This document shows positions 14,204-34,800 of a stretch of DNA of 45,597 nt, in pieces. The notes under the pieces were generated by a model. The model saw nothing but the letters and a program-made list of their open reading frames with translations, was not told the origin of the DNA and ran no database searches. The DNA lies in NCBI GenBank assembly GCA_020536535.1, contig JAHLWZ010000431.1, positions 1 to 45,597 on the forward strand. Reading direction: 5' to 3'. Position 1 is the first letter of the stretch; every line of letters begins with the position of its first letter. The stretch comes from Pelomyxa schiedti. Lineage: Eukaryota; Protista; Evosea. Made by a program: the position numbers and the translations under genes.

Positions 14204-15604
14204 CTACGGAAATTGTTGTTGCTCCCTTGTTGGGACAAAATAGGAGAACCTTGGGGACAGCACAGCACCTTTGTCTGTGGCCAACATGATGATGTTAGTA
14301 CCTGTCGAAGGGTCCGTCACACGGGCAACACAAGATCCAGGGGACTGTATGGTGCCGAAAAGAAAGCCACCTTCAGCAACCAAATTCCCCCAATAGGCGC
14401 TGCAATCAATCACAACAAGTGCGCCAACACGGATGTGGTCGATGTCCCAGATTGAAAACAGTGGTGGTAATTCACTCTGAACACAAAACAGTGACTCACT
14501 CAACTGCGACATGCATTTTACATTGGAAACACCAATCAGGGAGAATGCATCATCACCAGGCGTTATTCCTTCTGCCACTCGGCAAACACTTGATGCCTCA
14601 GGTGACGAGTGAACATGGAGGATGAAAACTCTCTTTCCACTTCCCTTTTCCATCATAACCAGTGCCTCCCTGATCCCATCCTCCTTCTCACACGGAGTAG
14701 TGAGGAATGAGGCTGAGGCCAGCACAGTAAGCCTGGAAGCCCATGTTTTCTCAATTTGAATCACAATCAAATCAATAGAATGGTCAGCCTGAACACTGCA
14801 CATCACACCCTCATCAGGGTCGGTGCGGCTGAAGAAGAACAAACTATGAAGCGCCCTCGGCCCGAGTCTTGGCACAGTACGTGTTGCCACCTCTTTCCCC
14901 ATGTCCTGAATGCCATAAATCATCAGAAAGGCCCCAGAGGCCTCCAGGCACACGAACCACTTTCCGTTTGTCTGGCAGTGCTTCACCTGGATAACGCCAT
15001 CCCGCAACGAAACACCTCTGCCGGTCTCATTGCTCCTCAAATAGTACAAATTCGACTTCTCCTCCTGAGAGAAGAAGCACATTTCCACCACGTTGCAGTG
15101 ATTGACAGACTTGGTGCACCACCGCGGCCTGTCGTCCCACCAACATTTAATGTCCCTCGTCAGTGACCCCAACATTGGTGACACCCCAAACGTGATCACA
15201 TTGTTTGCTGCAGCTTCAGTAGTGATAGTAGTAGTAGTATCTCCACCACAAACACCAAGAGCAACAGAGGCACAGAAGAACCTCATTGACTGGTGGCAGC
15301 AATCCCACACCAGCCTGACGACCATCACGAGGGTGTCGATACCAAGCATTCCCATAATCGACGAGTAGGCCGCGCCACACCGGGGGTGGGTAAAGGCCAA
15401 CAGCGCAACGAACTGGTCACGTGCACGAAGGCGCACAAGTGGAACAACCCGAGGGACGGTGCCCGCACTATAATGGGATTGCTCTTCTTGGTCGTAGTAG
15501 AAGGCGGAGCGTACTTGTTTCTTGCGTGTTTTTTTAGAACGCGCCACGCTATGGTTGCTGTCTATGACATTTTGCTGCTGGCCTGCTCGTTCATCGTCCA
15601 TCAT
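14204..15604 (-). CDS. 'ARDQF'-motif family protein, 466 aa, intronless
   Basis: RLRARDQFVALLAFTHPRCG..FGVSPMLGSLT..TNGKW..FFFSRTDPDE..SQLSESLFCV..AEGGFLF. Confidence 0.85.
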   Translation of the reverse strand: MMDDERAGQQQNVIDSNHSVARSKKTRKKQVRSAFYYDQEEQSHYSAGTVPRVVPLVRLRARDQFVALLAFTHPRCGAAYSSIMGMLGIDTLVMVVRLVWDCCHQSMRFFCASVALGVCGGDTTTTITTEAAANNVITFGVSPMLGSLTRDIKCWWDDRPRWCTKSVNHCNVVEMCFFSQEEKSNLYYLRSNETGRGVSLRDGVIQVKHCQTNGKWFVCLEASGAFLMIYGIQDMGKEVATRTVPRLGPRALHSLFFFSRTDPDEGVMCSVQADHSIDLIVIQIEKTWASRLTVLASASFLTTPCEKEDGIREALVMMEKGSGKRVFILHVHSSPEASSVCRVAEGITPGDDAFSLIGVSNVKCMSQLSESLFCVQSELPPLFSIWDIDHIRVGALVVIDCSAYWGNLVAEGGFLFGTIQSPGSCVARVTDPSTGTNIIMLATDKGAVLSPRFSYFVPTREQQQFP

Positions 15605-15771
15605 CTGATTTTCCTCGAATCAAGGTCACGTGCACAGCAATATATCAGGAATTACCTAAAGGTTTTGGCAGAAGAATGGTAGTTCTACTAACTTCAGATT
15701 GTGGCTCTGAAAACCCTGGTCCGATTCCAGGTGCCTCTCTTTTTGATTTCTGTGAACTATTAATCACTAAG

Positions 15772-17433
15772 ATGCAGGAGGCCCTGGCACGACATGGTTT
15801 GGAGGCACTCACGTCGTTCGGGGCGGGCGACTACGTGTCCGAGCTCCATTGCCTCTTTTTGCTTATGGGTGGTGGCTCACCTGACGAATTCGACATCAAC
15901 ACAATCGGCCTCAACAACAACAACACCTCTGGTTCTTATGCTAACTCACTTCCAGCCTCAAAAAGTGGTCGTTCTGATGCCTCAGACAACGCCACTGTCA
16001 CTAATGCAGCAACAAAGTGCTGTTGTGAGGTGGGAGTGATGGAGGAGGAACCACTGCCAGGAAAGGCACTTGGCCTGGTCCTTCTGAGGTACACCTACAG
16101 CAACAACCCTGAAATGTTCAGTCACCAAAGGCCGCATTCAGAATACATGCTGGATGCGTTGTTGGAGAGAGCAAAGAAGTGCAGTGGTGTGTGTCACAGG
16201 TTCATGAACGAGGTGCTGGACAGGGCATGCGATGTGAAGGTTGTTGATGTGGATGTGGATGGTGGCAAGTCGAGGGCTCTGTTCTGTGCTGGTCACTTCA
16301 TAAAGGGTTCTCTGCTGTTCAGGGGCCTTGGGATCGAGGAGGATTTCAAAGGGTGTGTGGCTCACATGAGGGCATGTGAGCCTTATCAATTTGCTTTGGC
16401 ACTGAACACGATTGGGCTGTGCTATGAAAAAGGGAAAGGTGTGGAAAAAGATGTGGGGAAATCTTTTCAGTTTTACATGATGGCTGCAGTGAAAGGAGTG
16501 CTTATTGCACAGGGAAACGTGGCTATGTGCTTCTGGAATGGGACTGGAGTCGAAATGGACAAAAAAGAGGCTTTTTCGTGGTTCAAACGGAGCAGTGCTC
16601 TCCCAGTTTCATGTTCCAAGCTGTCTCATTGCTACAGAATTGGGGAAGGTGTTGACAAGGACCCCCAGGAGAGCCTGAGGCTTCTGAAGTTTGCTGCAGA
16701 GCAGGGAGTGGCAAACGCGCAGTACAAACTAGCACAACAGACAAGTGACCCAGCTGCAGCTTGGAAGCTGCTGATGTTGGCTGCGGCACAAGGGTATTCC
16801 AATGCACAGTGCGAGGTTGGAAAGGCTCTGCTTAAAGGAAAGGGTGTGGACAAGAATACAGCCGAGGCATCCAGGTACCTAAGAATGGCAGCTGCACAAG
16901 GAAACCACTTTGCATTGGCAAGACTGGCTGCCATGTATCAATACGGTGATGGAGTGCCACTGGATAACTTCGAGGCCTTCAGGCTGTTCAGCCAGTCTGC
17001 AGAGTTGGGCAACCGTGCTGCACAGAGTGAGGTGGGAAGGTGCTACTACACTGGAAGAGGTGTTAATAAGGACTACTCTTTGGCTGTGCACTGGTTCAGA
17101 AAGGGCCTTGCTAATCCAAGGAAGGGAGGCTATGGGATGGCACACAACAGTCTGGCAAGGTGCTTCAGAGACGGACACGGTGTCGCAAGGGACACAGCTG
17201 AGGCATTCAGGCTCTACAGCATGGCGGCTCTGCACGGCAACTTGATCTCTCAGTTCAATGTGGGTGTGTGCCTGGAGAACCACGTTGGCACCCCAGCCAA
17301 GGACACGAGGGAGGCAATGAGGTGGTACCGCCTGGCTGCTTCCAGGGGGAATACTCCCTCTGTTAGAAGATTAGAAAGCATCATAACCAAATCAACTCGA
17401 CGCGCACAGCAACCACAAGACGATACCATGTGA
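15772..17433 (+). CDS. Sel1-like repeat (SLR) protein, intronless
   Basis: About nine repeats of the type ALNTIGLCYEKGKGVEKD..F.FY..AA..G and AQSEVGRCYYTGRGVNKDYSLAVHWF. Start could be 15676. Confidence 0.92.
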   Translation: MQEALARHGLEALTSFGAGDYVSELHCLFLLMGGGSPDEFDINTIGLNNNNTSGSYANSLPASKSGRSDASDNATVTNAATKCCCEVGVMEEEPLPGKALGLVLLRYTYSNNPEMFSHQRPHSEYMLDALLERAKKCSGVCHRFMNEVLDRACDVKVVDVDVDGGKSRALFCAGHFIKGSLLFRGLGIEEDFKGCVAHMRACEPYQFALALNTIGLCYEKGKGVEKDVGKSFQFYMMAAVKGVLIAQGNVAMCFWNGTGVEMDKKEAFSWFKRSSALPVSCSKLSHCYRIGEGVDKDPQESLRLLKFAAEQGVANAQYKLAQQTSDPAAAWKLLMLAAAQGYSNAQCEVGKALLKGKGVDKNTAEASRYLRMAAAQGNHFALARLAAMYQYGDGVPLDNFEAFRLFSQSAELGNRAAQSEVGRCYYTGRGVNKDYSLAVHWFRKGLANPRKGGYGMAHNSLARCFRDGHGVARDTAEAFRLYSMAALHGNLISQFNVGVCLENHVGTPAKDTREAMRWYRLAASRGNTPSVRRLESIITKSTRRAQQPQDDTM

Positions 17434-17560
17434 TATAATGTATCCCTCTTTGGCTGACATGATCAAGGCGGAGACTCACTTTGGCGCATCACCATCTTCT
17501 TCAAGATCAGCTCCACCGAAAATGATTGGTCCGAAAAACTTGGTGATAAAGGACTAAAAT

Positions 17561-19614
17561 TTAGTTATTACATTGGTTTTTAATCCAAGGGAATCTCATG
17601 TCCAAACTGGAGGGCTGGCCAGTGAGCAACACAGCAGTGAAGTTCTCACCGGTCACAACGTCGAGGCAGGACCCAGGCGGCACCCACGGCACAACCCCTG
17701 GAGCTTCCACTGACTTGCACATTCTGACGCCACACTCGAAGCTGGGGCAATATCCCCACGTGAACACGTCCCCCCAGCGCGTCAGCGCAGCATAGTGTTG
17801 TTTCGGCGACGAGTAGTCCGCAGCAGCACACACCTTGCACAGTGATGATGAATCGTTGTGAAGCAGTTGTTCATCTCCGGAAGATGGTGGTGGTGCGGTT
17901 GCCGTTGCTGCGAATGGGGGGTACCTCTTCTCGCTGCCGAGTTTGCTGTGGGTAACCTCCACCACACCGTGTGATGTCAACCACAGGGAGCTGGTGTGGC
18001 CGTCGGCAGCGCGCAGCACTCTCTCGCCGTCGCGGAGGCTGTGGCTGAAGAGGTTCCCGCCTTCGGATAGTTTTTGGGCACCGCCGGACTTCATTATCAG
18101 GGTCGCTGTGCCCCATGCTCCGATTCCCAGGCTCTTAACGCCGGTGGTGACTCGCCGCATGCGGCCCTGCGGTGGATTGAGTGTTGGCGGGAAAAAAGGG
18201 GGAGTTACATCGTTATGTTCTCCTGATTGCCATACAGTGCCATCCTCTGTGAGAACAACAGTATGAAACGATCTCATCTCCAGCTGTTTCACATTGGAAA
18301 ATCTCAGCTGCGTGAAGAAAGGGTATTAATAAAAGCTGAATAAGAGAACAAACAACCTGCATTATTGACAAAGGTTGACGTGCCGAGCAGAATGCCTTTT
18401 TGTTTGAATCAACTAACCCTATCGTCAATAGAAATCAGTATTGTAACTGTTCGGAGTTTGGCTGGATACCAACCAAAAGAGTGATGAGAACACGAAATTT
18501 GTCTCGGAGGCCATTTGAACGTTGATGGAAGGAGGGAGCTGATATCCTTTGGCGCATCCCCTTTGAAATCTTCACACTCATTAAATTTATTAAATTAATT
18601 GTATTATGCTTTATCTCCAAACTCACCTATCTTCAAATCACCCCAAAAGAAAAGTTGTCTTTCTGTTGTCGCAACAACCATGTGATACTGTCCGGCTCCC
18701 ATCATGATTACCTTAATTATTTTCCCCCACCCCAATCCATCCAAGGAGGTTAAAAATAAATGCAACTTGTTACCGCTTGAATACCTTGGTGTTTCCAAGT
18801 GGTGACACAGGAGAAGAGGTGTCCTCCTCTGATGGTTTTCCGAGTCTGAAACTTGAACCTCGTCCAAAAGTGAATAAAAATCTGATTTCCAAAGGGGAGT
18901 TAGGACGATAAATTCGGGAGGAAGGCAATTGTGTGGCAGCACACACCCGGGCATTCTCGGGACCCACACAGGTCTTTCCACCAAATCCCGCAACGCATCC
19001 CTTGGTGTCACTGCCATCACATTCCCATTTTCCCTGCCTCCTTCTTGTTCTCGTTGATGCGATGGGTCACCATCGCCTCGGTTTGTGGCTGTGGTGGCCG
19101 GTGGCAACAGCGAGGGAGCTGCTTCTACCCTGGACCATTCATCATCATCACCATCCTCCTCGCTGTCATCGGCTTCGTCGTGTCCACCACGGGCTGCGGC
19201 TGCCGTACCATCTCCGCCACCACCCCCGTTGTTGTTGTTGATGCTGTTGTTGTTGTTGTTTTGTTGCTCGAGCAACACGGACCAGAGCGACGACGTTGGG
19301 CTCGCGGCGAGGTCGGCCACGCGACGGCACGTGCACAAGAGTGACACGAAGTCGGAGCCAGAGCCTGGCCTGAAAGCAGCTGCGAGAATCGCGATGAGCG
19401 CCGGGTCCGGCAGTGTCGAAAACGACGCCGTTGTTGCTGTAGTTGTTGTTGCTGTGGTAGGCGGTGGTTGTTCTTCAGGCCGTGCGGTAGTGTGCGCCTG
19501 TGTGTCGGCTGGTACAATGGGTGCACCCGACCACAGGCGTGACAGGAGGTCCACGGTGCAACGATAGACGTACGACATTCTACGTTTAAACAAAGTTTCA
19601 CCAGTTGTTCTCAT
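17561..19614 (-). CDS. F-box-like + RCC1-repeat protein, copy A (apparently intact, 7 exons)
   Basis: FSTLPDPALIAILAAAF..FVSLLCTCRRVADLA..SSLWSVL (F-box-like LP..I...L..TCR..W pattern), then RCC1-type blades FTFGRG..RLG, MGAGQYHMVVAT..LFFWG, FHTVVLTEDGTVW, HYAALTRWGDVFTWG, VVTGENFTAVL. Splices cleanly with GT-AG introns. Confidence 0.8.
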
Positions 19615-19890
19615 AAGGCAGCACTAAGTGGCTGAAGAAAATAATCACCAGACGACCGGACGCTGTCATTTTCGTTATCGTCGCTCGGGATCGGCGGTCT
19701 GGTGTTTCTTTATTCCGCCAAGTGCCCTTTCTCCGACGTACCTTTCGGAGCACAATAACAACAATCATCCCCACCACTCAGCCACTGAAATTGCTATTGA
19801 AAATACCAATTTCAATAATATTATTGTTTATGCAGTTTTGTTGAAGTGGCACGTCGTGTGTCCCGTTCATCAATCTGGAGTGTATCACAA

Positions 19891-22800
19891 CTACAACCTC
19901 GTGGAGGAAGCAGAGATGGATGCAATGGTTGGTGAGAGTGACGACAACCACTGTGTGATGCCGACACTGACTTGGTCCTGCATGATCCCATAACCTGATC
20001 CTGATGCCGAGGAGAGGAGGGCAATGGCGGCAGATGTGCAACAACAGTGCAGAACCTGCATGATCACTGTGAATGGCACCCGGTTTATCTCTTTTTGGTA
20101 TTAGTGTTGGGTCGTTGTATTGTGATTTGTGTTGGGTTCACACACCACAAATCGAGAGGCATGACTGAACAATGAGGAGCAGGAGGTCTGGTGCGGTGCC
20201 AAGTGCAATTACTGCAGCCAAATTGGCATTGGGTGGTGCCACCAGTGAGAGAAACAGTGAGTTTGGTGAGTGGACAAGGTTCTTCACTACGTTGATGCAG
20301 GCTGTCCTCCTGCTCAGGCAGTGAGCAACAGTTGATTCTGTGGCCTCATGGCAGAGCCTGTTCACCTCTGCGGTTGTGGTGTAGTTTTGGGGGTGTGAAG
20401 TGATGACTGAACACTAACCTGCAACATCGGGAACCGGAAGTGACTTCTCCTGCTCCATGAGGAACATTGTCTGTTTTGCTGGAGGCAATTTGTGGAAGGA
20501 AGAGTCAACAATTTTCCCACAGATCATTTCAGTGGTCAGAACCCCAAAGCTCCAAACATCTCCTTTGTTTGTTGTGTGGTGGGTAATAAAGGAAATGGAG
20601 AACAAAACAAACCTTTTGATGTGTAATGCTTGGTGAACATCTGAGGGGACATGTAAACCAGTGTTCCTGGTCTATGGGTGCGGGTCTGTTGCACATTTGA
20701 AATAACTTGACTGGTTGTCCCACATGAGACACCTTTTTTGACTTGACATTAGCGTTGAAACACCAGGGAAGAAATGGATGTAATAATACCAAAATCACAG
20801 ATTTTTGGTGTTCCCTCAGCATCCAAAAGGATGTTGTTGCTACTCAGGTCTTGGTGCATATATTTTTGTCTGTGTCACAGCCAGAGGAAAGAGGATTTTT
20901 ATGACATTCATGGTAGAGAGTGAGAGAAAGACCTGTGAAGGGCATCCATTCCTTTGGCAACACCAAGTGCGATGGCTGTGACTTCTTGGAACTTCAACTT
21001 TCTCTGTTTTTCCTTGAAGTTGAAAAATGGGGGGAAAATGTAAAAAAACCCTTGCCTTGGCAAGGAGCTGTCTGAGACTGCAACACATAAGTTCAGACAC
21101 AATAAGAACTTTCCCTGATCCCGTTGTACATGTTCCAATGCACTCAACAATGTTGGGATGCCTCAAACCTCCCACAATCTGTACCGTTTTTTTTTTGTTT
21201 GATTGTTATTTTATTTCAACAAACCTCAGCTTCAAGCCTGAAACGGTCAATGTTGTAGGTTGACAGGATGGCATCGTGAAGTGACTTAACTGCAACATCC
21301 CTTGATGAAAGAAGTGTGCCTTTGAACACAGTGCCATAGCTCCCTGTTCCCAATTGTGACGAAATCTTGAGGTCTCTTTCTTGGATAGGCATCATTGGTG
21401 CGATTCTGACCATCACCTTCATTTGTGGTTCTGGATGTGTGTGAGATCGTCTCTGGGGTGGTTATGAGAAAACCTGAGCGAAGCAGAAGGTGTGACAATG
21501 TTGAAGATGTTCCAGAGAGGGTGATTTCAGTTGTCTCCTCCGAATTTGGGTTGTGTACAACAACAGATACAACTTGGTGGTTTTCAGCAACTCCAAACCG
21601 CTTTTCAATTTCCATTTTCACAATCTTTTCATTGTTTTTTTATTGTTTTGTTAATGTGAGTGAGATAATGTGTTAATGTGTGAAGTTGGAACAAAACCTT
21701 ATCAAAGGGGCACAGACTGCAGAAGGAATCTTGAAATGTGATGTTGGGTTTCTCCAAAGTGACTAAAGCATCCTTCATTGTAGTGTTGTTCTCTCTTTGG
21801 TTTGTCGCTGGTTGGAAAGTGGATTTAACCCAAGACCCCTGTTGAATGTGCTTCAGAACGTGGTCAAGGCCTTGATTGTTGTGTCAGTATCTTTTATGTA
21901 CTCTAATTCAAAAACAGTCAAACTTCTTGCGCACATTCCTCTTGCTTTTTTAACTCCTCAGCTTGAAGTCTCATCACTTTTTTTTGTGGTTTGTTTGGTA
22001 AGAAAACGAATTGGTGCCATCATACATTCTGTTTGTTCATCCAGTTTCTGTTGAATGATGGTTTTTTCTGTTTGCAACCTTCGCAATTCCTCCTGGTGAT
22101 ATACCCATTAAATTACTTTGAAAGAAGAGAAAGAAACCTCCATCAGTGGGTCACCACATCCCATGTGATGGCGGAATCCCCTATTTCCATGTTCTTGGAA
22201 AACACCACTTGTCACAGTGCCTTCGAACTTGGATGTTGTTGATGAACTGTCATGGCTCTTAACTGTGGCAATACCTTGGCCCACATCATCATCTGCAAAT
22301 GTGCCAGTGAATTTGTCACCATTTGGCCACGTCATTGTGCCCGACTTGATTGCACCCATCTCCCAAACACCATCAACCACTGTCCCATCACATGCCTGCA
22401 TCCTTTCTCCTTCACCGTTCTCCTTGCCATACAGCCACTCGCCCTCGTACCTGTCACCGTTTGCCCACAGCCTCACACCCCAACCCTGGAACTTGCCATC
22501 CACCCACTCCCCGGCGTAACTGCTGTTGTCATCAAACAGCATTCTCCCATTCCCACTCTTATTGCCGTGATAAAACATGCCATGATAGATGCCACCCGAG
22601 CCGTAGCCCGTGCCACAGGTCGTTCTCCCACTCTCCCTCATACAGCACTTGCCCGCTGCCCGCTCCTTCCCTTTGCACACCCCACCCATGCATGTCGTGC
22701 CGGTTCTTTTTCTCGTTCCACACCCACTCGCCCTCCCTGACATCGTTGTCGCCGTCGCCGTCGTCCTTGTTGGGGTGCCACGTCCCCCTGGCCCACCTGT

Positions 22801-23104
22801 TGTGCCTCCACAGGCCCTCGTACCACGAGGACCCGTCGGCATCGTTCCACAGGCCCCACCCGTCCCTGTAGTAGTTGTGCCACTCGCCGTCGTAGGCCTC
22901 CCCGTCGGCCTTCTTGAACACGCCTCGGCCGTGCCACTTGTCGTCTTTCCACTCGCCGGCGTAGGTGTCGCCGCTCGGCCACGTGACTGTGCCGCCGCCG
23001 TCGCGGCTGTTGTTTACGAGGCGCCCAGTGTACGTTCCATGGGGAAACTTGCGGCCAACAACCATCGTCGCGGTTGCTCCACGAGGTGTCGCCGTTGCAG
23101 CCAT
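19891..23104 (-). pseudogene. MORN-repeat / coiled-coil / ubiquitin-like / TKL-type protein kinase with one frameshift near 22600
   Basis: MORN repeats (YAGEWKDDKWHGRG, YEGEWLYGKENGEG); kinase motifs LGTGSYGTVFKG, VAVK, HPNIV, HQDLSSNNILL, KICDFG, GTLVYMSPQ, GDVWSFG. MORN repeats are split between ORFs 22559..23539 and 22108..22842 with no plausible intron. Could be a sequence error in an intact gene. Confidence 0.8.
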
Positions 23105-23230
23105 TGTAGTATCTGCCGAGATTCGAGCTGTACCAGAGAGGCAAACCCAAAATGAATTGAGGGGATGTTGTGTGTGCGTTCGTGCGTGGAGGTAGTCTCT
23201 GGGCCCAGACACAAATTCTGAGATAAACCC

Positions 23231-24505
23231 ATGGGCAGTAATCACACCAACGGCACGAACACTCCAACAAGCACAAGACATAATCACGGACTCACCATAA
23301 CCACCCACACCTCCCCGACGGGCCCCCAGCCGCCAGAGGTGGTGAGACAGATATCGGCCGCACGCCAGTGCGTCGCGTTCCTGTGCGGCACACTTGTCGC
23401 AAGGACGAGGGCACGGTCGCCAGGCAGGCTCCTTGCCGTGTCCCCATTGCTGGTCGAGCAGTTTGGCAGGGACTGGGTTGTGCGCGAGTGCAGGGATGCG
23501 GCGTTCACTGTGGATGTGGGCGGCGGGGTCTGTCTGCACTGTATTGTGTGGGTGTCACTTACCCTGGGCGTTGTGGGGTCTGTGCAGTTTGCCACGGCGG
23601 GGCCTGAGAGGTGCCAGCTTGTCGGGTGCGTTGGTTCTTCGAGGGGAACCGGAATGGGTTGGGGTGTGGCACCTGGAGTTGGGCCCAGTGGTTGCTGCTG
23701 CAGGCTGCTGATGACGAGGACACACCGTGACAGCGGTGTGAATTCGGTTGATGTAGTGGATGGAACCCGGCTCGGTGGTGAGAAACTTGTTCCGTGGTTG
23801 TGGACCTTGTGAGCTGCAGGTCAGTTGCAACAGTAGGTGGATTGTTTTGATGGAGGCAAGTGAGATTACATTGTGGAAGCTTTGGTCTGCCCACGAGCAG
23901 GATGGGGCTGACTGTGAGTTGGACACAGAGGAGACCTGCATAAAGATACTGCTAGATACGCATCCCCTCTGTCATACTTTGCATGAGAACGACCCCGATG
24001 TTCTTCTGATGACTGTGGGCAACTCAGAGGTTTTACTGTGGCACATTGACTTGAAGGAGAGCTTTTGCAAGCGAGCAATAGTGTTCAAAAGTGATCACAT
24101 CCCAGTGCCATTTGGTAAAACTGTGCTAGGAGGTGACCCTATCTGTACTGCTCAAAGTGTAGAAGCCGACAAGTTCCACATCCATAACTCCAGAACCCAC
24201 CAAACAACAGCCATTAAAGGTGGATTCTACCCTCTGAGTGGGCACCTGTTCTCAGTCTGGAACTCCACTGAAGATTACAACAAAGTGTTGGTGTTCTGCA
24301 CTGCTGACCTCATCAGCCCTCTGTACTTTGTTGACTGCTCCACAAGAGGAGCTGACAGAGGGTTCTCACCTGTCTTCTACAAGCTGAGTTTGTACTGTGG
24401 GAAGTTGTCCCTCAAGGAACAGTGAAGCACAGGCAGAAGAAGTATGTACTAGCAGATAGTGTGACTGACACAATTTTGGCTATTGTCAACTACCCAAAAG
24501 ATTGA
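23231..24505 (+). pseudogene. 'ARDQF'-motif family member with two frameshifts
   Basis: ISAARQCVAFLCGTLVAR..SP..EQFGRDWVV. Removing one C from acccgg (~23767) joins it to ORF 23760..24425 (CNSRWIV..LWHIDLKES). A third frame gives a family-like end YVLADSVTDTILAIVNYPKD* at 24505. Confidence 0.75.
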
Positions 24506-24607
24506 CACTGGCATGGGTGGTCTGTATGTTGGCACTGTGGAAAAAATAACAGAAGTGGACCACCTGGAGCCACTTTCAAACGTTTACATCTTTTGTTTTC
24601 GCTGAGC

Positions 24608-26303
24608 TTAAAGGAGGTCAGTGCGGAGTAACACGGCAGTGAAGTTCTCACCAGTCACAACGTCGAGGCATGACCCAGGTGGAACCCACGGCACAACTTC
24701 TGGACTGACACCACACTCGAAGCTGGGGCACTGCCCCCAGTGAACACGTCGCCATCTCGTGTCAAAGCAGCGTAGTGGTGCTGCATGGGTTCACAGTAGT
24801 CCGCGCCAGCGCACACCTTGCACAGTGCGTCGATGTGGCGCGGGAATCGGAAGTAAGTCATGTCGTGGTCGGGGTTGCTGGGGTGCACTTCCATCAGGCT
24901 CTGTGATGTCAACCACAGCGACGGTATGTTGCCGTCTGCGGCGCGCAGCACTCTCTCGCCGTCGCGGAGGCTGTGGCTGAAGGTCTGCCCTCCTTCGGCT
25001 AGTATTTGGGCACCGCCGGACTTCATTATCAGGGTCACTGTGCCCCATGCTCCGGTTCCCAGGCTCTTAACGCCAGTCGTGACTTGCAGCATGTTTTCCT
25101 GTTTTCAGTTGATTGGAAATTGGTGATTGGGCAATGACATAACATAGGTTCCCTCATTTGTTTGCCACACAATTCCACCCTCAGTGAGAATAACAATGTG
25201 AAACAATCTCAGCTCCAGCTGTTTCACATTGGAAACGCTCAGCTGGCATCAGTATTAATTATGTTAGCTAACATAAAAGCAGTATTATGATGAAATGAAG
25301 AAACCTGTATTATTGACAAAGGACCACGTGTTGAACAGAACGCCTTTTGGTTTGAATCAATCAATCCTGAGTTCGCAGTCAGTCTCTTGTGTTTGGTGGA
25401 TTGGAGACCAACCAAAAGAGTGATGAGAACACGAAATATGTCTCGGAGGCCATTTGAACGTTGATGGAAGGAGTGAGCTTACGTCCTTTGGTGCATCCCC
25501 TTTGAAATCTTCACACTCATTAAATTAATTTAACGAGGTTGCAGTTACGCGCTCACCAATGTCCAAATCACCCCATAAGAAAAGTTGTCTTTCTGTTGTC
25601 GCAACAACCATGTGATACTGTCCGGCTCCCATCATGATCACCTGAATTATTATTCCCCCCCACCCCAATCCATCCAAGGAGGTTAAAAACAATGCAACTT
25701 GTTACCGCTTGAATACCTTGGTGTTTCCAAGTGGTGACACAGGAGAAGAGGTGTCCTCTGATTGCTTTCCGAGTCTGAACCTTGAACCTCGGCCAAAAGT
25801 GAATAAATATCTGTCCCCGACTTAGAGGAGTAATTTACCAACAACAATAGCACACACCCAGGCCTTCTAGGTACCCACACAGGTCTTTCCACCAAACGTC
25901 GCAGCACATCCCTTGGTGTCACTGCCATTCCATTTCCATTCCAATTGCTGTCCCCAGAGTTTTGGCATTCACTGGTTTCCACACCATTGTCATTGTTGTA
26001 TTGCTCAAGCAAGACGTACCACAGCGACGACGTGGGGCTAGCGGCGAGGTCCGCAAAGCAACGGCACGTGCACACAAGAGACACAAAGTCAAACCCACAC
26101 CCGGACCTGAAGGCCGCCGCGAGAATCGCGACGAGCGCAGGCTCGGGCAGCATCGAAAACGACGCCGTAGTCGTTGTCCCCATGGTGGTTGTGGGTTTCG
26201 TCGCCGTACCGGGAGGCGTTGTAGAGGGCCACAAACTCGACAACAATTCGACGTATCGGATGACACTCGACATTCTTTTCTTGGAAGCCACGATGGTGCC
26301 CAT
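24608..26303 (-). pseudogene. F-box-like + RCC1-repeat copy B, 1-nt deletion near 24739
   Basis: Same exon set as copy A. FTWGQC of the paralogs reads FTGGSA; correcting one base restores PWVPPGSCLDVVTGENFTAVLLRTDLL*. Confidence 0.8.
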
Positions 26304-26381
26304 TTCCCTAATTTCTGGTTTTTTTGTTCCTGGTAGTTACAACAGAAGAGGGAACGAGGCCTACTATAACATGTTTTTTCT

Positions 26382-28061
26382 TCAAGATAAGCCTGTATGG
26401 TTGACGGTTAGTAACACAGCAGTGAAGTTCTCACCAGTCACAACGTCCAGGCATGATCCACGTGGAACCCACGGCACAGCCCCTGGAGCTTTCACTGTTC
26501 CGCGGTTGGGCACACCACACTCGAAGCTGGGGCACTGCCCCCACGTCAGCACATCGCCATCACGTGTCAATGCGGCATAGTGCTGTGTTGGTTCAGTGTA
26601 GTCGGAACCAGCACACACCTTGCACAGTGCAAGATCATGGTGGCTGTGCAGTTGTTCACAGGCAGGTGGTGTGGTTGTTTCCGTTGCTGTTTTTGTGTTG
26701 AATGGGGGGTACCTCTCTTCTTCGAGGTTGCCCTGATTCACCTTCACCACACCGTGTGATGTCAACCACAGGGAGCTGGTGTTGCCGTCGGCAGCATGCA
26801 GCACTCGCTCACCGTCGCGGAGTCTATGCTTGAGGAGGCCACCATCTTCAGAAAGCATTTGTGCAGTGCCGTACCTCATTATCAGGGTCACCATGTCCCA
26901 TGCTCCAATTCCCAGGCTCTTCACATCAGTTGTGACTTGTTGAATGGGTATAAAGGGAAAGAGATCCTCAGTTGTTTGCCACACAGTGCCATTCTCAGTG
27001 AGAACAACAGTGTGAAACGCTCTCATCTCCAGCTGTTTCACATTGGAAAGGCTCATCTATCATGAAGAGTGTTAATAACTGAACAGCAGACAACATGACA
27101 CACTTGTTGAATTGAAAAAGGTGGCTCTGAAGTGCGGAATGCGTTTTTGTTTGCATCAACCAATCCTGAGTTTGTTGTCAGAGTGCGCGGTTGGGGTGTG
27201 AGCGGAACAAACCAAATGAGTGATGAGCACACGAAATTTGTCTTGGAGGCCACTTGAACTCTGATGGAAGCATAGATGTGATGTCTCTGGGCCCATCTTC
27301 AAAATCACCCATGGTTAAATCACCCCACAAGAAAAGTTTTTTTTCTGTTGTGGCAACGACCATGTGATACTCTCCAGCTCCGATCATGAATACCTGCACA
27401 CACAAGTTAAGTGCAGTTGTCACTTGAGTCTTGAAATGTGGCATTTACCTTGGTGCTGTTTCCAAGTGGCGACACAGGAGAGGCTGTATCCTGTGATGAT
27501 TTTCCAAGTCTGCCCCTTGAGCCTCGTCCAAACGTGAACAAGTAGCTGTTTAAAACATTAGCCCACATAATGCAACTCAAAAATTTGAGTGATAGTGGAC
27601 ACACACCCAGGCCTTTTTGGGAGCCACACAGGGCGTTCCACCAAATCCCGCAGCACATCCCTTGGTGTCACAACCACCACCCCAACCCCATTTCCATTTC
27701 CAGTGCTGTATTCACTGGTGGCTGGCACATCAGTCTCAAGTCCATTGTCATTGCTGTATTGCTCAAGCAACACGTACCACAGCGGCGCCGTGGGGCTCGC
27801 GGCGAGGTCAGCAAAGCAACGGCACGTGCACACAAGAGACACAAAGTCAAACCCACACCCGGACCTGAAGGCGGCCGCGAGAATCGCGACGAGCGCAGGC
27901 TCGGGCAGCATCGAAAACGACGCCGCAGTCGTTGTCGCCATGGTGGTTGTGGGTTTCGTCGGTGCCATGTCGATGTGTTTGGTGTGCCGAACTGGGGGTG
28001 TTGTAGAAGGTGACCATAAACTCGACAGCAATTGGACTCCGTGTCGGATGGCACCGGACAT
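26382..28061 (-). CDS. F-box-like + RCC1-repeat protein, copy C (apparently intact, 5 exons)
   Basis: FSMLPEPALVAILAAAF..TCR..LW; YLFTFGRGSRGRLG; VFMIGAGEYHMVVAT; last exon is ORF 26382..27056. Splices in frame. Confidence 0.82.
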
Positions 28062-28094
28062 CTTTTTTGATCAAGCTTTTTTTTTTTAAAGAGC

Positions 28095-29751
28095 TTAAAG
28101 GAGGTCAGTGCGGAGTAACACGGCAGTGAAGTTCTCACCGGTCACAACGTCGAGGCATGATCCACGTGGAACCCACGGCACAACCCCTGGAGCTTCCACT
28201 GCAGTGCACATGGGCACACCACACTCGAAGCTGGGGCAATCGCCCCACGTGAACACGTCGCCGTGGCGCGTCAGTGCAGCGTACTGCTGTGTTGGTTCAG
28301 TGTAGTCCCCACCAGCACACACCTTGCACAGTGCATGTTCTTGGGTGCTGTGCCGCTGTTCACAGGCAGTTGGTGTTGTTGTTGCGGGTGGGGGGTACCT
28401 CTTCTCGTCTGCGAGGTTTCTCTGGTTCACTTCCACCACACCGTGTGATGTCAACCACAGGGATTTGACGTTGCCGTCAGCAGCATGCAGCACTCTCTCA
28501 CCGTCGAGGAGGCTGAAGAGGTCGCCATCTTCAGAAAGTAGTTGGGCACCGCCGGACTTCATTATCAGGGTCGCCATGTCCCATGCCCCAATTCCCAGGC
28601 TCTTCACATCAGTTGTGACTTGTTGAATGGGTAAAAAGGGAAATGTCAGCTTCTTTGTTTGCCAAACGGTGCCATCATCAGTGAGAACAACAGTGTGAAA
28701 CGCTCTCATCTCCAACTGTTTCACATTGGAAAGACTCATCTGGAAGAGTGTTAATAACTGAACAGCAGACAACATGACACACACCTGTTTTATTGACAAA
28801 GGTACCTCTGATGAGCAGAATGCGTTTTTGTTTGAATCAACCAATCCTGAGTTTGTTGTCAGCGTATGTGGGTTGAGGTGTGGGCAACCGAATGAATGAT
28901 GAGCACACGAAATTTGTCTTGGAGGCCACTTGAACTCCGATGGAAGCAGTGATGTGATATCTATGGGCTCATCATTGTTCTCAATCATGGACAGATTACC
29001 CCACAAGAAAAGTTTTTTTCCTGTTGTGGCAACAACCATGTGATACTCTCCAGCTCCGATCATGAATACCTGCACACACAAGTTAATAATAAATATTTAT
29101 TAGTGCAGTTCCCACTTGAGTCTTGAAATGTGGAATCTACCTTGGTGCTTCCAAGTGGCGACACAGGAGAGGCTGTATCCTGTGATAATTTTCCAAGTCT
29201 GCCCGCTGATCCTCGTCCAAATGTGAACAAGTAGCTGTTTAAATCTTAAATATTAGCCGACGGGATCGGTTTTCCCTCAAAGTAGTAATATTTATTATTA
29301 ATGATTATTATAATAGATCGAGTGTTACACACAGACACAACCAATAACAACAGCACACACCCGGGCATTTTTGGTACCCAAAAGGGGCGGGCCATCAAAT
29401 CCTGCAGTGCATCCCTTGGTGTCACCGCCATCACATTCCCATTTCCATTTCCCCTGACTCCTTCTTGTTCTTGTTGTTGTTGGTGTGACGATGTTCCTCG
29501 GTAGCTCACATCATTGCTGTCGGATCTGCCAACGAGTCCGCGCCTTGGTATTCCGCCAGCAACACGCACCACAGCGACGACGTTGGGCTCGTGGCGAGAT
29601 CGGCGACGCGTCGGCACGTGCACAAGAGTGACACGAAGTCGGAGCCAGAGCCTGGCCTGAAAGCAGCTGCGAGAATCGCGAGGAGTGCCGGGTCCGGCAA
29701 CGTAGAAAACGACGTTGCAGCATTACTCTCTGCCGTTGTTGCGGTGGACAT
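28095..29751 (-). pseudogene. F-box-like + RCC1-repeat copy D, frameshift in exon 1 (~29510-29560)
   Basis: F-box-like segment lies in ORF 29506..29760 but the conserved VTPRDAL..RP.WVPK.PG lies in ORF 29246..29623 (other frame); RCC1 exons intact (28095..29081). Confidence 0.78.
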
Positions 29752-29858
29752 CTGGCACAACCGTTAGTTGCTTTTTAACGTTTCGAATTTGATTGATGGG
29801 AAAGAAGCTGTTTGGCGCTGTTGTTTACCATGGAACACTCCAGGGGCAGATCGAGAGT

Positions 29859-31524
29859 TCAGAGATTTTTCTTCAAACGAAATAGATGCAGGTCCAAGGG
29901 CTTGTTCACGTTTAGTAACACAGCAGTGAAGTTCTCACCAGTGACAACGTCGAGGCATGACCCACGTGGAACCCACGGCACAACCCCTGGAGCTGCCACT
30001 ACCCTCGTTCTTACACCACACTCGAAGCTGGGGCACTGGCCCCAAGTGAACACGTCCCCACAGCGGGTCAGTACAGCGTAGTGCTGTGTTGGCTCCGCGT
30101 AGTCCGCGCCAGCACACACCTTGCATGGTGCACTATGCAAGGCAGGCGGTGGTGTCGTTGTTGCTGCTGGTGGTGGTGTTGTTGCCGCGAATGGGGGGTA
30201 CCTCTTCTCGAAGGAGTCGAGGTTGTTGTGGTTCACCTCCACCACACCGTGTGATGTCAACCACAGGGATCTGGGTTTGCCGTCGGCAGCACGCAGCACT
30301 CTCTCGCCGTCGCGGAGGCTGTGGCTGAAGAGGTTCCCGCCTTCAGATAGTTTTTGGGCACCGCCGGACTTCATTATCAGGGTCACTGTGCCCCATGCTC
30401 CGGTTCCCAGGCTCTTAACGCCAGTTGTGACTTGCCACACAGTGCCATCATCAGTGAGGACAACCGTGTGAAACGCTCTCATCTCCAGCTGTTTCACATT
30501 GGAAAGACAGATCTGGAAGAGTGTTAATAACTGAACAGCAGCGGACATAACTTAGATAACGAGACACACCTGGTTTATTGACAAAGGTCGCTCTGATGAG
30601 CGGAAGGCTTTTTTGTTTGAATCAACCAATCCTGAGTTTCCTTGTCAGAGAGGAGTTGGGGTGTGAGTGGATACCAACCAAATGAGTGATGAGAGCACGA
30701 AATTTGTCGTGGAGGCCACTTGAACTCTGGTGGAAGCAGTGATGTGATATCTCTGGGCCCAACATTGGTCTCACCCATGTTTAAATAACCCCACAAGAAA
30801 AGTTTTTTTTCTGTTGTGGCAACAACCATGTGATACTGTCCGGCCCCCATCATGAATACCTGCACACACAAATCAACATGACTTGAATAGGAAATATCTA
30901 CCTTGGTGCTGTTTCCAAGAGGTGACACAGGAGAGGCGGTATCCTCTGAAGATTGTCCAAGTCTGCCCCGTGAACCTCGTCCAAACGTGAACAAGAACCT
31001 GTTTAAATGTTAGTTACGTGGTTATCCCAATTTAATACAGCTATAGTTGCGCCACGACTGCGCTCCACATTTTTCATTAAACCTGTGTGTGACACACACA
31101 GACACACCCGGGTGTTTTTGGGAACCACACGGGGCGTTCCACCAAATCCCGCAGCGCATCCCTTGGTGTCACAACCACCATCCCATTCCCATTTCCCCCA
31201 CTGGCTTCCTGTTGTTGTTGTTGTGATGAATCGCAATGGCATCGGGTGGTGGTGCAAGATGACGGTTCTCCGCAATCGATTGCGATGAGGCTGCCGTGTA
31301 TCATCGAGTAGGCGCCGGTGCACTGTTGCTGCTCCGTCTGACTCGAAAGCAGCGGCGAGAATGGCGATGAGTGCCGGCTCGGGCAACGTCGAAAACGTTG
31401 TTGTTTCGGTGGTACTACTCGAAGAGGGTGCCGGCAGTTGCTCTGGAGGCGGTGCACCGGTTGTTGTACCCACGAGCACAGTGGGTTCTTCCCGTACTGG
31501 TTTTAAACGGTAACGAGAAGACAT
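29859..31524 (-). pseudogene. F-box-like + RCC1-repeat copy E, frameshifting deletion of the F-box core
   Basis: FSTLPEPALIAILAAAF is followed directly by (other frame) EQQQ..VTPRDALRDLVERPVWFPKTPG; the FVSL.CTCR..LW block is missing. RCC1 exons intact. Confidence 0.78.
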
Positions 31525-31815
31525 CACAATAATTTGAAGGGAAGTTTTTTTATTTTTTGATAGGAGAGAGAGGACGAGCCTCTCCCTCAGTCACAAAAAT
31601 ACGTGATCAAAGCGCATTAGTTGACGACCAGGAGCACGGTTGCTCATTAGTAAAAGGCGAATGACAAAAACGTTATGCGCCTGGCCCTGCGCCGGTGATT
31701 TGTTAAATCAGTCCGCACTTCGATTTTAAAGCAGGGGACAAGGTGCCGAATTATGGTACGAAAAACCGTGTGTTCCCCTAAAGTTCAAAACATCAACGAC
31801 ACAAATTTGTGAGAC

Positions 31816-34800
31816 ATGTCACAAGGGTACGGGGACTACTACGACGACGGCACGGGCGCGTCGGGTTCGTCGGCATACGGAGGATCCTACGACGACTACT
31901 CCTCCTCCTCCGCCTACGACGACTCCTACTCGTCCCCCCAACAACAGGCCCCACCACCTCCACCACCCACAACAGCCACACCCACATCACCCGCTACCAC
32001 CCCCACCACCACCACGACAACTCCTCCTCCGCCTCCACCACAACACCCACCGGCGATGGCATCACCAACATTGGCGGCCCCGCCCCCGCCACGCCCCTCG
32101 CCTCCATCCCTATCTCCATCACCATCACCGTCGCATACACCGCCCAATCTCAATCCCACTCCCACTCCGACCACGGCCACGCCGACGGCGGCGGCGGTCG
32201 CTCCCACGGGGCCGCCTGCTCAGCCGGCACCAAAAGTGGGGGTGCCACCTGTGACCACCACTGCAAGAGGGAGAGGTTGTGCGCGTGTGTGCGTGCGTGT
32301 GACTGTGCGTGCGCGTGTGTGTAGTACTTGTTTGGCTGTTGTTGTTTTGTTGTTTTGTTGTTGTTGTTGCTGTTGTGGCTATTTATATTTCGAACGTGAA
32401 AATGTGTGTACTTATGCACTTACATTCACAAACGAACAGCACCCCCGGCGCTGATGACACCCAATCGTCTGTCATTGTCTGGGGCACAGTTCCAAGCTTT
32501 CAGACAGGCGGGCGTCATGCCACCCTCAGTTGTTCTCACCAACCCACCCAGTCGCCCTCCGCTGTCCCGCGGCCCTCCCCCGCGCGCGGCGCCTCCCGCG
32601 CGGAGTGCTGTCCAGCCCCCTTCTCCCGCTGTAATTCCTCCTCATACTACTGCTGATTCTACGCCTACTCCTAGTCCTGTTACTAGTTCCGACCATGGAA
32701 ATGATGAATACGGCAGCAGCGCAGCTACTCCCCCTCCTCATCGGCCTGTCACAACGTCTCTGCCTCCCCGCTTGCCTCCAGGGACCCGCGCCCCTCCTGG
32801 CACTGACACTGCCAGCAGACCACCGGTAGGCCCACCAGGCATCTGTCAAAGAGGGAGAATTGGGGCCCCAAAAGTTCCCACAGACCAGGAAACTTCCACT
32901 AATACACCCCCGGAGCAAGCCGCACCGCTTCCCACACGAGAACGATCCAACTCCAACCCAACACCTCCAGGTATCGCAGCAAATATTTCAGCTTCACCTA
33001 CAACACCAAGTGCTGAGCATACTGATCTCCCTCCTGATATTGGACCGCCACCTCCTCCCCCTGAATCACATGTAGATATTCCTCCCCCCACAGCGAGTGT
33101 CGAAATTCAAGTTCAGCCCCCTTCACACAAAGATGCAGCGTCTCCTCTTGTAAATTCTACCCCAGTCAGAGGACCTCCTCAACGTACCGCTTGTGGTCCC
33201 CCTGGCTCGCAGAATAAATCTGGACCCCCAATTAAATCAGTGATTTACAAGCCAGTGTCAATTGGTGGTGGCCCCCCTTCGAGAGGTCCTCCTTCACGTT
33301 TACCCACAATGCCCACCTCACCTCAACTCCCAACCACAATTCCTGCACCAGTTTCCAATACCGATGCTTATGGTGGCTATGGTGACTATGGTGACTTCAA
33401 TGCTTCTTCAACCGCTGATTATGGGTATGGAGGTTCGGACAACCTCTCTGTTACCCCTTCTCTCACAACACCACCTTCACTACCAAGTACTACCTCTCAG
33501 GAGCCTTCATTACCTTCAACTACATGTGAAAAGGGACCGCCTACATCTGAAACAACATCTTCCACAACAGAATGCACTGCCTCCCCGCCTTCACCAAAAC
33601 CTCTGCCACTTTCAGGTCCTGCAAGCAATCCGCCTGCCAAAAAAGGGCCTCCAGCTAGAGCTACATCAACCCCTGTGCAGCAAACCACAGCTACCATGGC
33701 TCCAACAACACCAGATGGGTACAATGATAGCACCAATGGAGTTGGTGACACCAATAGTTATGATTTGTACAACTATGACTCCTCTAGTGGTGCCAACTAC
33801 GGTGGATATGGAGACGGAAATTATGGCTCTGGTGATTCAAGTTACGGGTCCAACTGTGGCGAGAATACCACTAGTTCCTATGGGCAAGTAGGGCATTCAA
33901 TGACTGACTATGGCACTGTTACAGCCCCAACTATAGTACCAAAAATGATACCCACAATAAACTCACGACCCCCGAGTTTGACCCCCGTTCTACTTGCAAA
34001 GCGTAGCACATCACCCGGAAGTACAACTGTAACCACCAGGAATCCACCAAACAGGCGCGCCTCAATGCCGGCCGAGGTTTTAGCGGCTGAATTAGCAAAA
34101 GCACACTCCCTTTCACCACCATCGAGTCCCGCCATACCAGCGACTAAGCCCCCTGTGACTGCCACAAGTGGCAGCTCTCTACTTCCCGGACTACCCAAAA
34201 ATCCAACTGCTCCAACTCCAGCTTGTAAAGCGGGACCCCCAGCACGCAGAGCGTCTATTGCCTTGGATACATCTCTCAACAGACCCAAAAGCTGGGGACC
34301 ATATGATCAAGAAGTTGCGTCCTATAACCCCAGTGAATATGGTATTTAGGCTTTATTTTAATTTTAACGTGGTTCTGAGTTTCCTTCGTAGGAGAAATAA
34401 CTCCTTCCCCTCTTGCCAATAATGAACAAGGTGTTCCACCTGACCTTCCATCAAACACAACAACCCCCTCTGGCCCTCTACCTACAGCATCCCCACCAAA
34501 CATCAACGCCATACACCCTCAGCCAAGTAACAATCCACCAACAGATGTTCCACCACCAGGTACACCAGATGCTTCCTCTAGATACCTCTTTGCTGAGCCG
34601 GACACTGCTGATAACATATGTTACCGCACTATTGGTGGGGAAACAAAATTATATGGAGCAACACTTCCCAAACTTGTAGAAAAACTTACTGATGTGACAA
34701 TACCAGGTCTCCATAACTTTTTTTTTGTTGCTCATTATGTCCAGGACCCCAATTTGTGAAATCATTCTTGCTGACATATAAATATTTCTCAAATACCAAG

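Follow-up and report, generated by a model that had tools for sequence, protein, structure and literature searches.

Mosaic RCC1-repeat paralogs in Pelomyxa schiedti: a patchwork that looks like gene conversion between tandem duplicates

Five paralogous genes encoding a weak F-box-like motif and RCC1 repeats were detected on the minus strand of the window (the whole stretch of 45,597 nucleotides of Pelomyxa schiedti DNA analysed here). They raise the question of whether one history of duplication can account for every part of these genes or whether the copies have exchanged segments. The initial annotation had proposed repeated recombination, with the frameshifted copies possibly acting as donors, as in antigenic-variation archives. 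The five copies are designated A to E:

17561-19614, minus strand: paralog A (Pelo_5381 region), type I, 6 introns; model based on ORFs, intron mapping, the spliced frame and the annotated protein
24604-26303, minus strand: paralog B (Pelo_5384), type I, 6 introns
26382-28061, minus strand: paralog C, type II, 4 introns, about 489 amino acids
28095-29760, minus strand: paralog D, type II, with a frameshift in the low-complexity linker
29859-31527, minus strand: paralog E, type II, with the F-box-like motif half deleted and out of frame

The E, D, C and B genes follow each other head to tail in this order on the minus strand, with roughly 35-110 bases from each stop to the next start, and copy A is set apart from the array by 5 kb and three unrelated genes. 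We detected further copies, A2 and F, on two other contigs (C1392 and C1257, respectively), giving a family of about seven members (seven or more). A word-based search (E<=0.001) recovered relatives from P. schiedti alone, and judging from sequence the gene family appears so far to be known only from this species. In each copy, a low-complexity linker joins a weak N-terminal F-box-like motif to an RCC1-like repeat domain.

Introns were picked by junction-peptide guidance and the joined models served for the reading-frame check; for searches, single exons or proteins from databases were the queries. Paralog A looks intact, with the F-box-like motif and the RCC1 repeats in a common frame and a long low-complexity linker. 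Paralog C looks intact as well, and an RNA contig covers 26460-26715 within it. Measured against the full architecture, the remaining three window copies, B, D and E, have disrupted frames. In B, a deletion and a frameshift in the last exon remove about 50 C-terminal residues, and a D-like coding remnant at 24620-24745 is now out of frame. In D, the linker frameshift places the F-box-like part and the RCC1 part in different frames; in E, the loop at the intron 6 site has been lost by an in-frame deletion. The 5' module has been kept by every copy. The public annotation has gone astray at this locus, with Pelo_5385 fusing D exons to C exons over a 1.75-kb "intron".

The RCC1 assignment was supported by profile matches. 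PF13540 scored 25.9-42.2 bits in A, D and E (cut-off 22), and PF00415 and PF13540 are precomputed matches on the annotated proteins; the PF25390 score was far under its 150-bit cut-off. The nearest solved relatives are the HERC2 RLD and RCC1, and the RCC1_2 repeat matches lie above the Pfam cut-off; the sequence similarity to the solved RLDs spans one or two blades only. The AlphaFold2 model of the annotated B protein (P0004), built from a 13-row alignment, is unreliable (mean pLDDT 49.5); in it, residues 170-405 are all beta strands. The F-box HMM PF12937 gave 13.5-18 bits, below its cut-off of 24.3, at the same position in A, B, C and D, and a profile of the F-box-like region from six copies found no match among PDB sequences up to E = 10. 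A role of the motif as a putative Skp1-binding element is only a lead. Human FBXO24 is an F-box plus RCC1 protein; as in proteins of this kind, the weak F-box-like match is found on the N-terminal side of the repeats, yet it stays below threshold.

The closest relative of each copy changes along the gene. By segment, the nearest paralogs are B and C, and A and D, in the 5' module; A and B, and C and D, in the middle; E and A/B in the last exon; and B and D at the terminus. The tracts are listed here from the 5' to the 3' end of the gene:

25987-26202, minus strand: 5' module of B, matching C 27745-27961 at 206/215 positions (95.8%); A ranks second for B, at 77%
27745-27961, minus strand: 5' module of C, partner of the B tract; its 3' edge is crossed by contigs from three runs
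19271-19430, minus strand: 5' module of A, matching D 29558-29717 at 147/160 positions (91.9%), with a 70-base exact match
29558-29717, minus strand: 5' module of D, counterpart of the A tract, with Logan contigs (29157-29487 and 29652-29940) across its edges
18470-18886, minus strand: internal patch of A (exon 2, intron 2, exon 3, the 3' part of intron 3, exon 4), matching B 25409-25815
25409-25815, minus strand: internal patch of B, partner of A/A2
26964-27550, minus strand: middle of C, from exon 2 to exon 6; its closest match is D 28647-29239, 89% identical overall
30182-30435, minus strand: last-exon patch of E, an A/B-type conversion patch with E as the recipient
24604-24699, minus strand: 3' terminus of B, matching D 28091-28186
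28091-28186, minus strand: 3' terminus of D, partner of the B terminus

Identity within single genes is uneven. From exon 2 to exon 4, A/A2 and B are 94-96% identical, with 93-99% in intron 2, where B is nearer to A2 (99%) than to A (93%); their introns 1, 4 and 5 are put at only 53-59% identity, and introns 1 and 4 as flanks of the patch at 51-54%. Between C and D, identity rises to 93-99% over the stretch of exon 2 to exon 3 and is 98% for intron 5, with only 56% for intron 1 and 82% for the terminus. B and D are 94.4% identical over 24611-24699 and 28098-28186, and an exact 49-mer lengthens the match to 24604 and 28091. In the last exon, E is 92.4% identical to A within the patch versus 82.8% to F, while the E-F flanks are 95.0% (upstream) and 97.9% (downstream) identical. 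The A2 copy bears the whole A mosaic at 94% identity. Tract identities are 92-96% and tract lengths about 90-420 bases, and the tract edges fall at the low-complexity linker, introns 1 and 4 and the variable loops, which are points where homology collapses.

The strings on which the first proposal had been built were recovered. The quoted peptides were found in the ORFs at their places, the 49-mer occurs exactly twice (24604-24652 and 28091-28139), and two intron strings are confined to A and B (18730/25663 and 18565/25504). The sliding-window identities confirm that the closest relative switches along the gene.

We analyzed the significance of this pattern with our own implementation of a PHI-type test and with 3SEQ-like and GENECONV-like tests, together with sliding-window identity, segment ML trees, AU tests and parsimony segmentation. 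The PHI-type test gave z = -17 when run on the five window copies and z = -22 on all seven, the observed value being reached in 0/2000 permutations. Segment ML trees contained conflicting splits, each with 100% support, and AU tests rejected the rival clades (p = 1e-3 to 1e-60). Parsimony segmentation divided the five-copy alignment into 3 segments and the seven-copy alignment into 7, versus <=2 in column-shuffled controls. The GENECONV-like run test was significant in 13/21 pairs (Bonferroni-corrected p <0.05), and the 3SEQ-like test, which also found the B 5' module tract, gave 85/210 ordered triplets with a maximum descent >=15 reached in <=1/2000 permutations. The tree topology shifts significantly along the gene, and a single duplication tree cannot yield the pattern, as the initial annotation had argued. 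The terminus shared by B and D is the weakest part of the mosaic: it was significant in the run test and the segmentation, and the AU test over columns 2100-2300 was not decisive (p = 0.12).

The tracts take in introns and third codon positions, so the exchange took place in the DNA and the pattern is not protein convergence. In the 5' module, 37/38 third codon positions match between B and C, versus 21/38 between A and B.

The mosaics could in principle have been created by the assembly. The P. schiedti genome is a co-assembly of seven MDA-amplified single cells, scaffolded with RNA and assembled from 2x300 reads with k up to 121 (PMC8887013). Chimeras might thus come from the SPAdes co-assembly, from the popping of bubbles between cells or haplotypes, from the RNA scaffolding or from MDA template switching. 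Consistent with this, graph branches and small alternative contigs exist in the family: the ends of contigs C3962 and C2010 overlap C and A2 exactly over 121 bases, the 715-base contig C3779 is a variant, 95% identical, of the stretch where the 3' end of C meets the 5' start of B, and a graph branch at 27762 coincides with the 3' edge of the tract shared by B and C, where a contig of run X1 ends exactly. A chimera re-links real segments, so 100% identity would be expected, and the tract pairs here differ by 4-8%. The longest exact match between any two window copies is 73 bases, which offers no path switch to a de Bruijn graph with k up to 121. We also compared runs over 24900-30899 by Logan k=31 contigs, which drop rare variants and were assembled separately for each of three runs with differing coverage gaps. 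Among the pieces listed, contigs from all three runs bridge the B, C and D junctions with 0-2 mismatches; at the edge of the C 5' module, the contigs 27064-27762, 27468-27846 and 27468-27840 have 0 mismatches. The mosaic of A recurs in A2 on a separate contig. An artefactual origin is, in our view, extremely unlikely. The graph branches within the family and the C3779 contig suggest that the true copy number and linkage may exceed those presented here.

We also looked for new mosaics by comparing the variants between sequencing runs with the states of the paralogs, and neither variant set gives evidence of any. The variant at 30345 is best explained as an A contig placed on E, the two copies having 53 identical bases in common there. 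For the run X3 variants in B, an additional copy or haplotype that is nearly identical is the indicated source.

Tandem duplications and unequal crossovers without any conversion could also bring different relatives together in one gene, if the duplicated unit were offset, starting midway through one gene and extending to the next 5' module. With the order E, D, C, B on the minus strand, such a unit would make the middle of D plus the 5' module of C resemble the middle of C plus the 5' module of B. It predicts exactly what was found, with C and D nearest in the middle and B and C nearest in the 5' module. Two 5' types and two middle types, moreover, are found in all four pairings among A, B, C and D, which fits crossovers in the linker. 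Under this reading, though, identity along the unit should not be as uneven as it is (intron 5 is 98% identical and intron 1 only 56%, and the terminus, where D has its match in B instead, is at 82%). The patches A 18470-18886/B 25409-25815 and E 30182-30435 have sequence of different ancestry on either side, and the internal patches join copies that are not adjacent. As a full account, duplication without conversion is improbable; an offset duplication unit could have produced part of the B-C plus C-D pattern without conversion.

Internal patches bounded on both sides by other ancestry suggest conversion, unlike the result of a single crossover. We consider it very probable that the patchwork reflects repeated non-allelic homologous recombination between the copies, mainly interlocus gene conversion, and the PHI, AU, 3SEQ-like, GENECONV-like and segmentation results concur with recombination as the best explanation. 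The molecular mechanism is inferred, as are any selective value and how many events there were and in which order. The mosaics would have been built over evolutionary time, mainly by breaks repaired on a paralog template, leaving internal patches of about 90-420 bases, and unequal crossing-over within the array may have contributed additionally. Tract edges at points of homology collapse would fit a heteroduplex, or repair synthesis, that halts at heterology.

The direction of exchange could be assigned for one event only, in which A/B-type (type I) sequence entered the broken copy E. E is identified as the recipient by comparison with its sister F, which has retained C/D-type (type II) sequence at this place. 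The 92-96% identity of the tracts indicates exchanges that happened long ago and have become fixed.

Trypanosome VSG, Borrelia vlsE and Neisseria pilS are systems in which segments are copied between related sequences, including untranslatable ones, and chicken pseudo-V genes offer a similar model. A programmed diversity archive of this type, with broken silent donors copied repeatedly into an expressed copy, had been suggested for the frameshifted copies. The disruption of B, D and E was confirmed, and these copies have recent tracts in common with the intact ones; conserved modules separated by variable loops and linkers also resemble such a system, as does the involvement of untranslatable copies in segmental copying. 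The donor role was not supported. The family has only about seven copies, each with its own 5' module, and the tract identities are those of old events. The sole polarised event ran from a type I copy into broken E, not out of a broken donor, and A2 has inherited the A mosaic. The junctions checked (B, C and D) are identical across three runs. The RNA data are thin, and RNA contigs match at least two copies, C and an F-type spliced transcript. The F-box-like motif weakly suggests a product that is probably cytosolic, not a surface antigen. In contrast to the VSG, vlsE and pilS archives, there is here no expression site, no large silent archive and no sign of ongoing switching; the polarised event enters a broken copy and the product is probably intracellular. 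We find a programmed archive scarcely credible.

There is only a slim chance that the array is a small, actively recombining, substrate-receptor-like repertoire, in which exchange between intact and broken copies yields new combinations of 5' module, blade and loop; if this were true, prokaryotic endosymbionts or other contents of the Pelomyxa cell would be a possible driver, and ectopic recombination would be unusually frequent in this multinucleate amoeba. Plant NLR clusters and S-locus F-box genes are clustered receptor-type families with mosaic evolution, and the Pelomyxa array is similar to them in its tandem birth-and-death evolution, broken members and module-reshuffling exchange. Unlike in those clusters, no sign of a recognition function, diversifying selection or a large repertoire was seen here.

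The array looks like ordinary gene conversion between tandem duplicates rather than a programmed variation system. The fog-2 and ftr-1 genes encode F-box proteins and provide the nearest comparison. Interlocus conversion has been documented for closely spaced, same-orientation paralogs, introns included, for example in tandem fog-2/ftr-1, which are FTR-family paralogs, fog-2 being a sex-determination locus (PMC3966223). In both systems, adjacent same-orientation paralogs lie <1 kb from each other, the tracts are patchy, measure tens to a few hundred bases and run through short introns, and gene trees are confused by exchange. In the Pelomyxa copies the second domain is RCC1-like and not FTH, and instead of one pair there are five to seven copies, among which at least five or six exchanges took place.

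Taken together, the Pelomyxa array is a new example of a well-known process, and its value is mostly practical. For mosaic copies of this kind, gene trees, orthology calls and dating are meaningless for the family unless they are made segment by segment. The array is also a worked example of how a mosaic in a single-cell co-assembly can be distinguished from an assembly chimera. To our knowledge, the recombination biology of Pelomyxa has been little studied, and the locus shows that paralogs in this Archamoeba have undergone homologous recombination with each other.

Pelomyxa schiedti is an anaerobic Archamoeba, and the window is one contig (C431) of its 52.4 Mb assembly of 5337 contigs. The locus matches the annotated proteins Pelo_5381, Pelo_5384, and Pelo_5385 and holds five paralogs, A to E, each an F-box-like segment (5' module) followed by RCC1 repeats. 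Paralogs E, D, C, and B are arrayed head to tail, with stop-to-next-start gaps of ~35-110 bases, and three unrelated genes separate A from B.

Features of the locus
17561-19614, minus: paralog A
20400-21700, minus: split protein-kinase-like gene (as read from ORF translations)
22108-23539, minus: MORN-repeat gene (PF02493)
23760-24425, plus: unknown 221-aa ORF
24604-26303, minus: paralog B
26382-28061, minus: paralog C
28095-29760, minus: paralog D
29859-31527, minus: paralog E

Very proline/threonine-rich ORFs lie upstream of E (31816-34349, plus). When the entire genome was searched with DNA and exon-wise protein queries, only two further full copies of the RCC1-repeat family, A2 and F, were detected, plus three small fragment contigs. 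A2 (contig C1392) is 94% identical to A and carries a degraded version of its Sel1-gene flank; F (contig C1257) is closest to E, and ~220 bases of upstream flank are common to both. The block (window 14882-19448) with the Sel1-repeat gene (15676-17433, plus) and paralog A is segmentally duplicated at least twice (C1392, 2337-5072, where the Sel1 part is only fragments, and C2010, 986-2397).

Introns were placed with the help of junction peptides and of the gene model annotated for B. All seven copies have introns 1, 2, 4, and 5. Only A, A2, and B (type I) also carry introns 3 and 6 (B 25509-25556 and 25099-25143; A 18570-18626 and 18167-18208), which are absent from C, D, E, and F (type II), and these two structural types agree with the middle-segment tree. 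In E, the loop where intron 6 would sit falls within an in-frame deletion. In the spliced models, a single open frame runs through the F-box-like motif and RCC1 repeats of A, A2, and C. The B last exon carries a deletion and a frameshift, and D is shifted in frame within the low-complexity linker. Half of the F-box-like motif is missing from E, which has also lost the frame; in F, the motif is not preceded by an ATG. The linker follows the F-box-like motif (A 18950-19270, equivalent positions in B-E) and has a high content of N, G, D, E, T, and Q; it and a T/P-rich loop in exon 7, the last exon (A ~17870-17970), vary greatly in length among copies, and several of the tract edges as well as the frameshift of D fall within them.

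RCC1_2 repeats were detected above the Pfam cut-off, with the HERC2 RLD and RCC1 as the closest solved relatives. The F-box-like match (PF12937; 13.5-18 bits, below the 24.3 cut-off) is consistent in position in A, B, C, and D; used as a profile, this region had no match in the PDB, and the attempted structure prediction was unreliable (pLDDT 49.5). The C last exon is covered by an RNA contig from a single-cell transcriptome, and a second RNA contig aligns gap-free to the exon 2-exon 3 junction of F, with intron 2 spliced out. In this second contig, from RNA run X4, an apparent E-C joint (window 30717-30861 and 27457-27487) was rejected as a trans-paralog joint: rebuilt from these window stretches rather than its own letters, the contig scored 170/176 ungapped against spliced F exon 2-exon 3 (+1 match, -1 mismatch), and so represents an F-type transcript lacking intron 2. 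The Pelo_5385 model (window 26385-29431) fuses the D end of exon 1 and exon 2 (29431-29360, 29233-29138) to C exons 3-7 (27390-26385), skipping ~1.75 kb as an intron where true introns measure 42-126 bases; the near-identity of C and D has probably misled the annotation here. The Pelo_5381 model of A has exon 2 in the wrong frame and lacks the F-box-like exon part.

The initial annotation proposed that these paralogs are mosaics of each other through recombination. The strings it quoted were all found in place and confined to the copies named for each, and the switching of the closest relative along the gene was seen in identity windows of 100 columns.

Nearest pairs by segment
5' module: B-C, 95.8% (B-A 77%); A-D, 91.9%
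Exon 2 to exon 4: A/A2-B, 94-96%
Last exon of E: E-A, 92.4% (E-F 82.8% here, 95.0% upstream, 97.9% downstream)
Terminus (3' end): B-D, 94.4% (B-A 77.5%, D-C 82%)

Maximum-likelihood trees of five segments gave mutually exclusive splits, each with 100% support: (B,C) and (E,F) for the 5' module, (A,A2,B) and (C,D) for the middle, and (A,A2,B,E) versus (C,D,F) for the last exon. AU tests per segment rejected the clades of other segments (p 1e-3 to 1e-60). Our implementation of a PHI-type test gave z = -17 with five copies and z = -22 with all seven, with 0/2000 permutations as low as observed. In a 3SEQ-like maximum-descent test, 85 of 210 ordered triplets had at most 1/2000 permutations reaching their descent (>=15). 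With all 15 or 945 topologies considered, optimal segmentation found three segments for five copies and seven for seven, against at most two in column-shuffled controls, and a GENECONV-like longest-run test was significant after Bonferroni correction for 13 of 21 pairs, the B-D terminus among them. One tree over the whole alignment is therefore clearly rejected.

The genome was co-assembled from seven MDA-amplified cells with SPAdes in single-cell mode (k up to 121; 2x300, HiSeq, and Nanopore reads) and subsequently RNA-scaffolded (PMC8887013), so that assembly or amplification chimerism has to be taken seriously. The assembly graph does branch within the family. However, the longest identical stretch between any two window copies is 73 bases. 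Every tract pair differs by several percent, so all segments are distinct sequences and only their linkage could be in error. Logan k=31 contigs, built separately from three runs of the same sample as the assembly, with different coverage holes, cross the junctions of B (25778-26048), C (27064-27762, 27468-27846, 27468-27840), and D (29157-29487, 29652-29940) with 0-2 mismatches, in a comparison confined to 6000 bases (24900-30899, outside A and the B 3' end), where the contigs listed cover junctions of B, C, and D but not the E junction or the B/D terminus. The whole mosaic of A also recurs in A2 on a separate contig. These results argue against chimeras, the alternative named in the initial annotation.

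Two small contigs, C3962 (561-681) and C2010 (2277-2397), end in exact 121-base overlaps, the k of the assembler, with C (27762-27642) and A2, respectively, and are assembly-graph branches. The C3962 branch attaches unrelated low-complexity sequence to C near the 3' edge of the tract shared by B and C, and may represent either an MDA chimera or an additional copy truncated at its 5' end. Contig C3779 (1-715) is a 95% variant of the stretch where the C 3' end adjoins the B 5' start (window 26620-25928). Its two sides are 98.6% identical to C and 93.8% identical to B, which points to another array unit or divergent haplotype left unassembled. Together, the three contigs suggest that additional copies, haplotypes, or MDA junctions exist.

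A/A2 and B share 93-99% identity in intron 2 and 53-59% in introns 1, 4, and 5; C and D share 98% in intron 5 and 56-61% in intron 1. Third codon positions track the shared tracts as well. The tracts thus take in non-coding and silent positions, which points to exchange at the DNA level, not convergence. Tract edges fall where homology is lost, at the linker, introns 1 and 4, and the variable loops. Offset tandem duplication or unequal crossover could yield the B=C 5' module together with the C=D middle, but identity along the supposed duplication unit is very uneven, and the A/A2-B and E tracts are internal patches with both flanks of different relationship, the geometry of gene conversion, which neither process can explain. 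At the site of the E patch, F, the sister of E, has retained type II sequence (84-86% to C and D, a background distance), so that the direction of conversion is readable from this comparison, with E as the recipient of A/B-type sequence.

The best reading of the sequence data is ordinary non-allelic homologous recombination between copies of a young tandem family, its products probably fixed over evolutionary time. Such recombination is well described for closely spaced paralogs of the same orientation, with tracts of tens to hundreds of bases passing through short introns (PMC3966223). The suggested analogy to antigenic-variation archives failed in every testable feature: the family has only about seven copies, 5' modules are present in all copies, the age of the tracts and the direction of the sole polarised event (into E) do not fit, and the junctions compared in B, C, and D are identical in three runs. 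The mosaic RCC1-repeat array of P. schiedti is a new example of an already known process.
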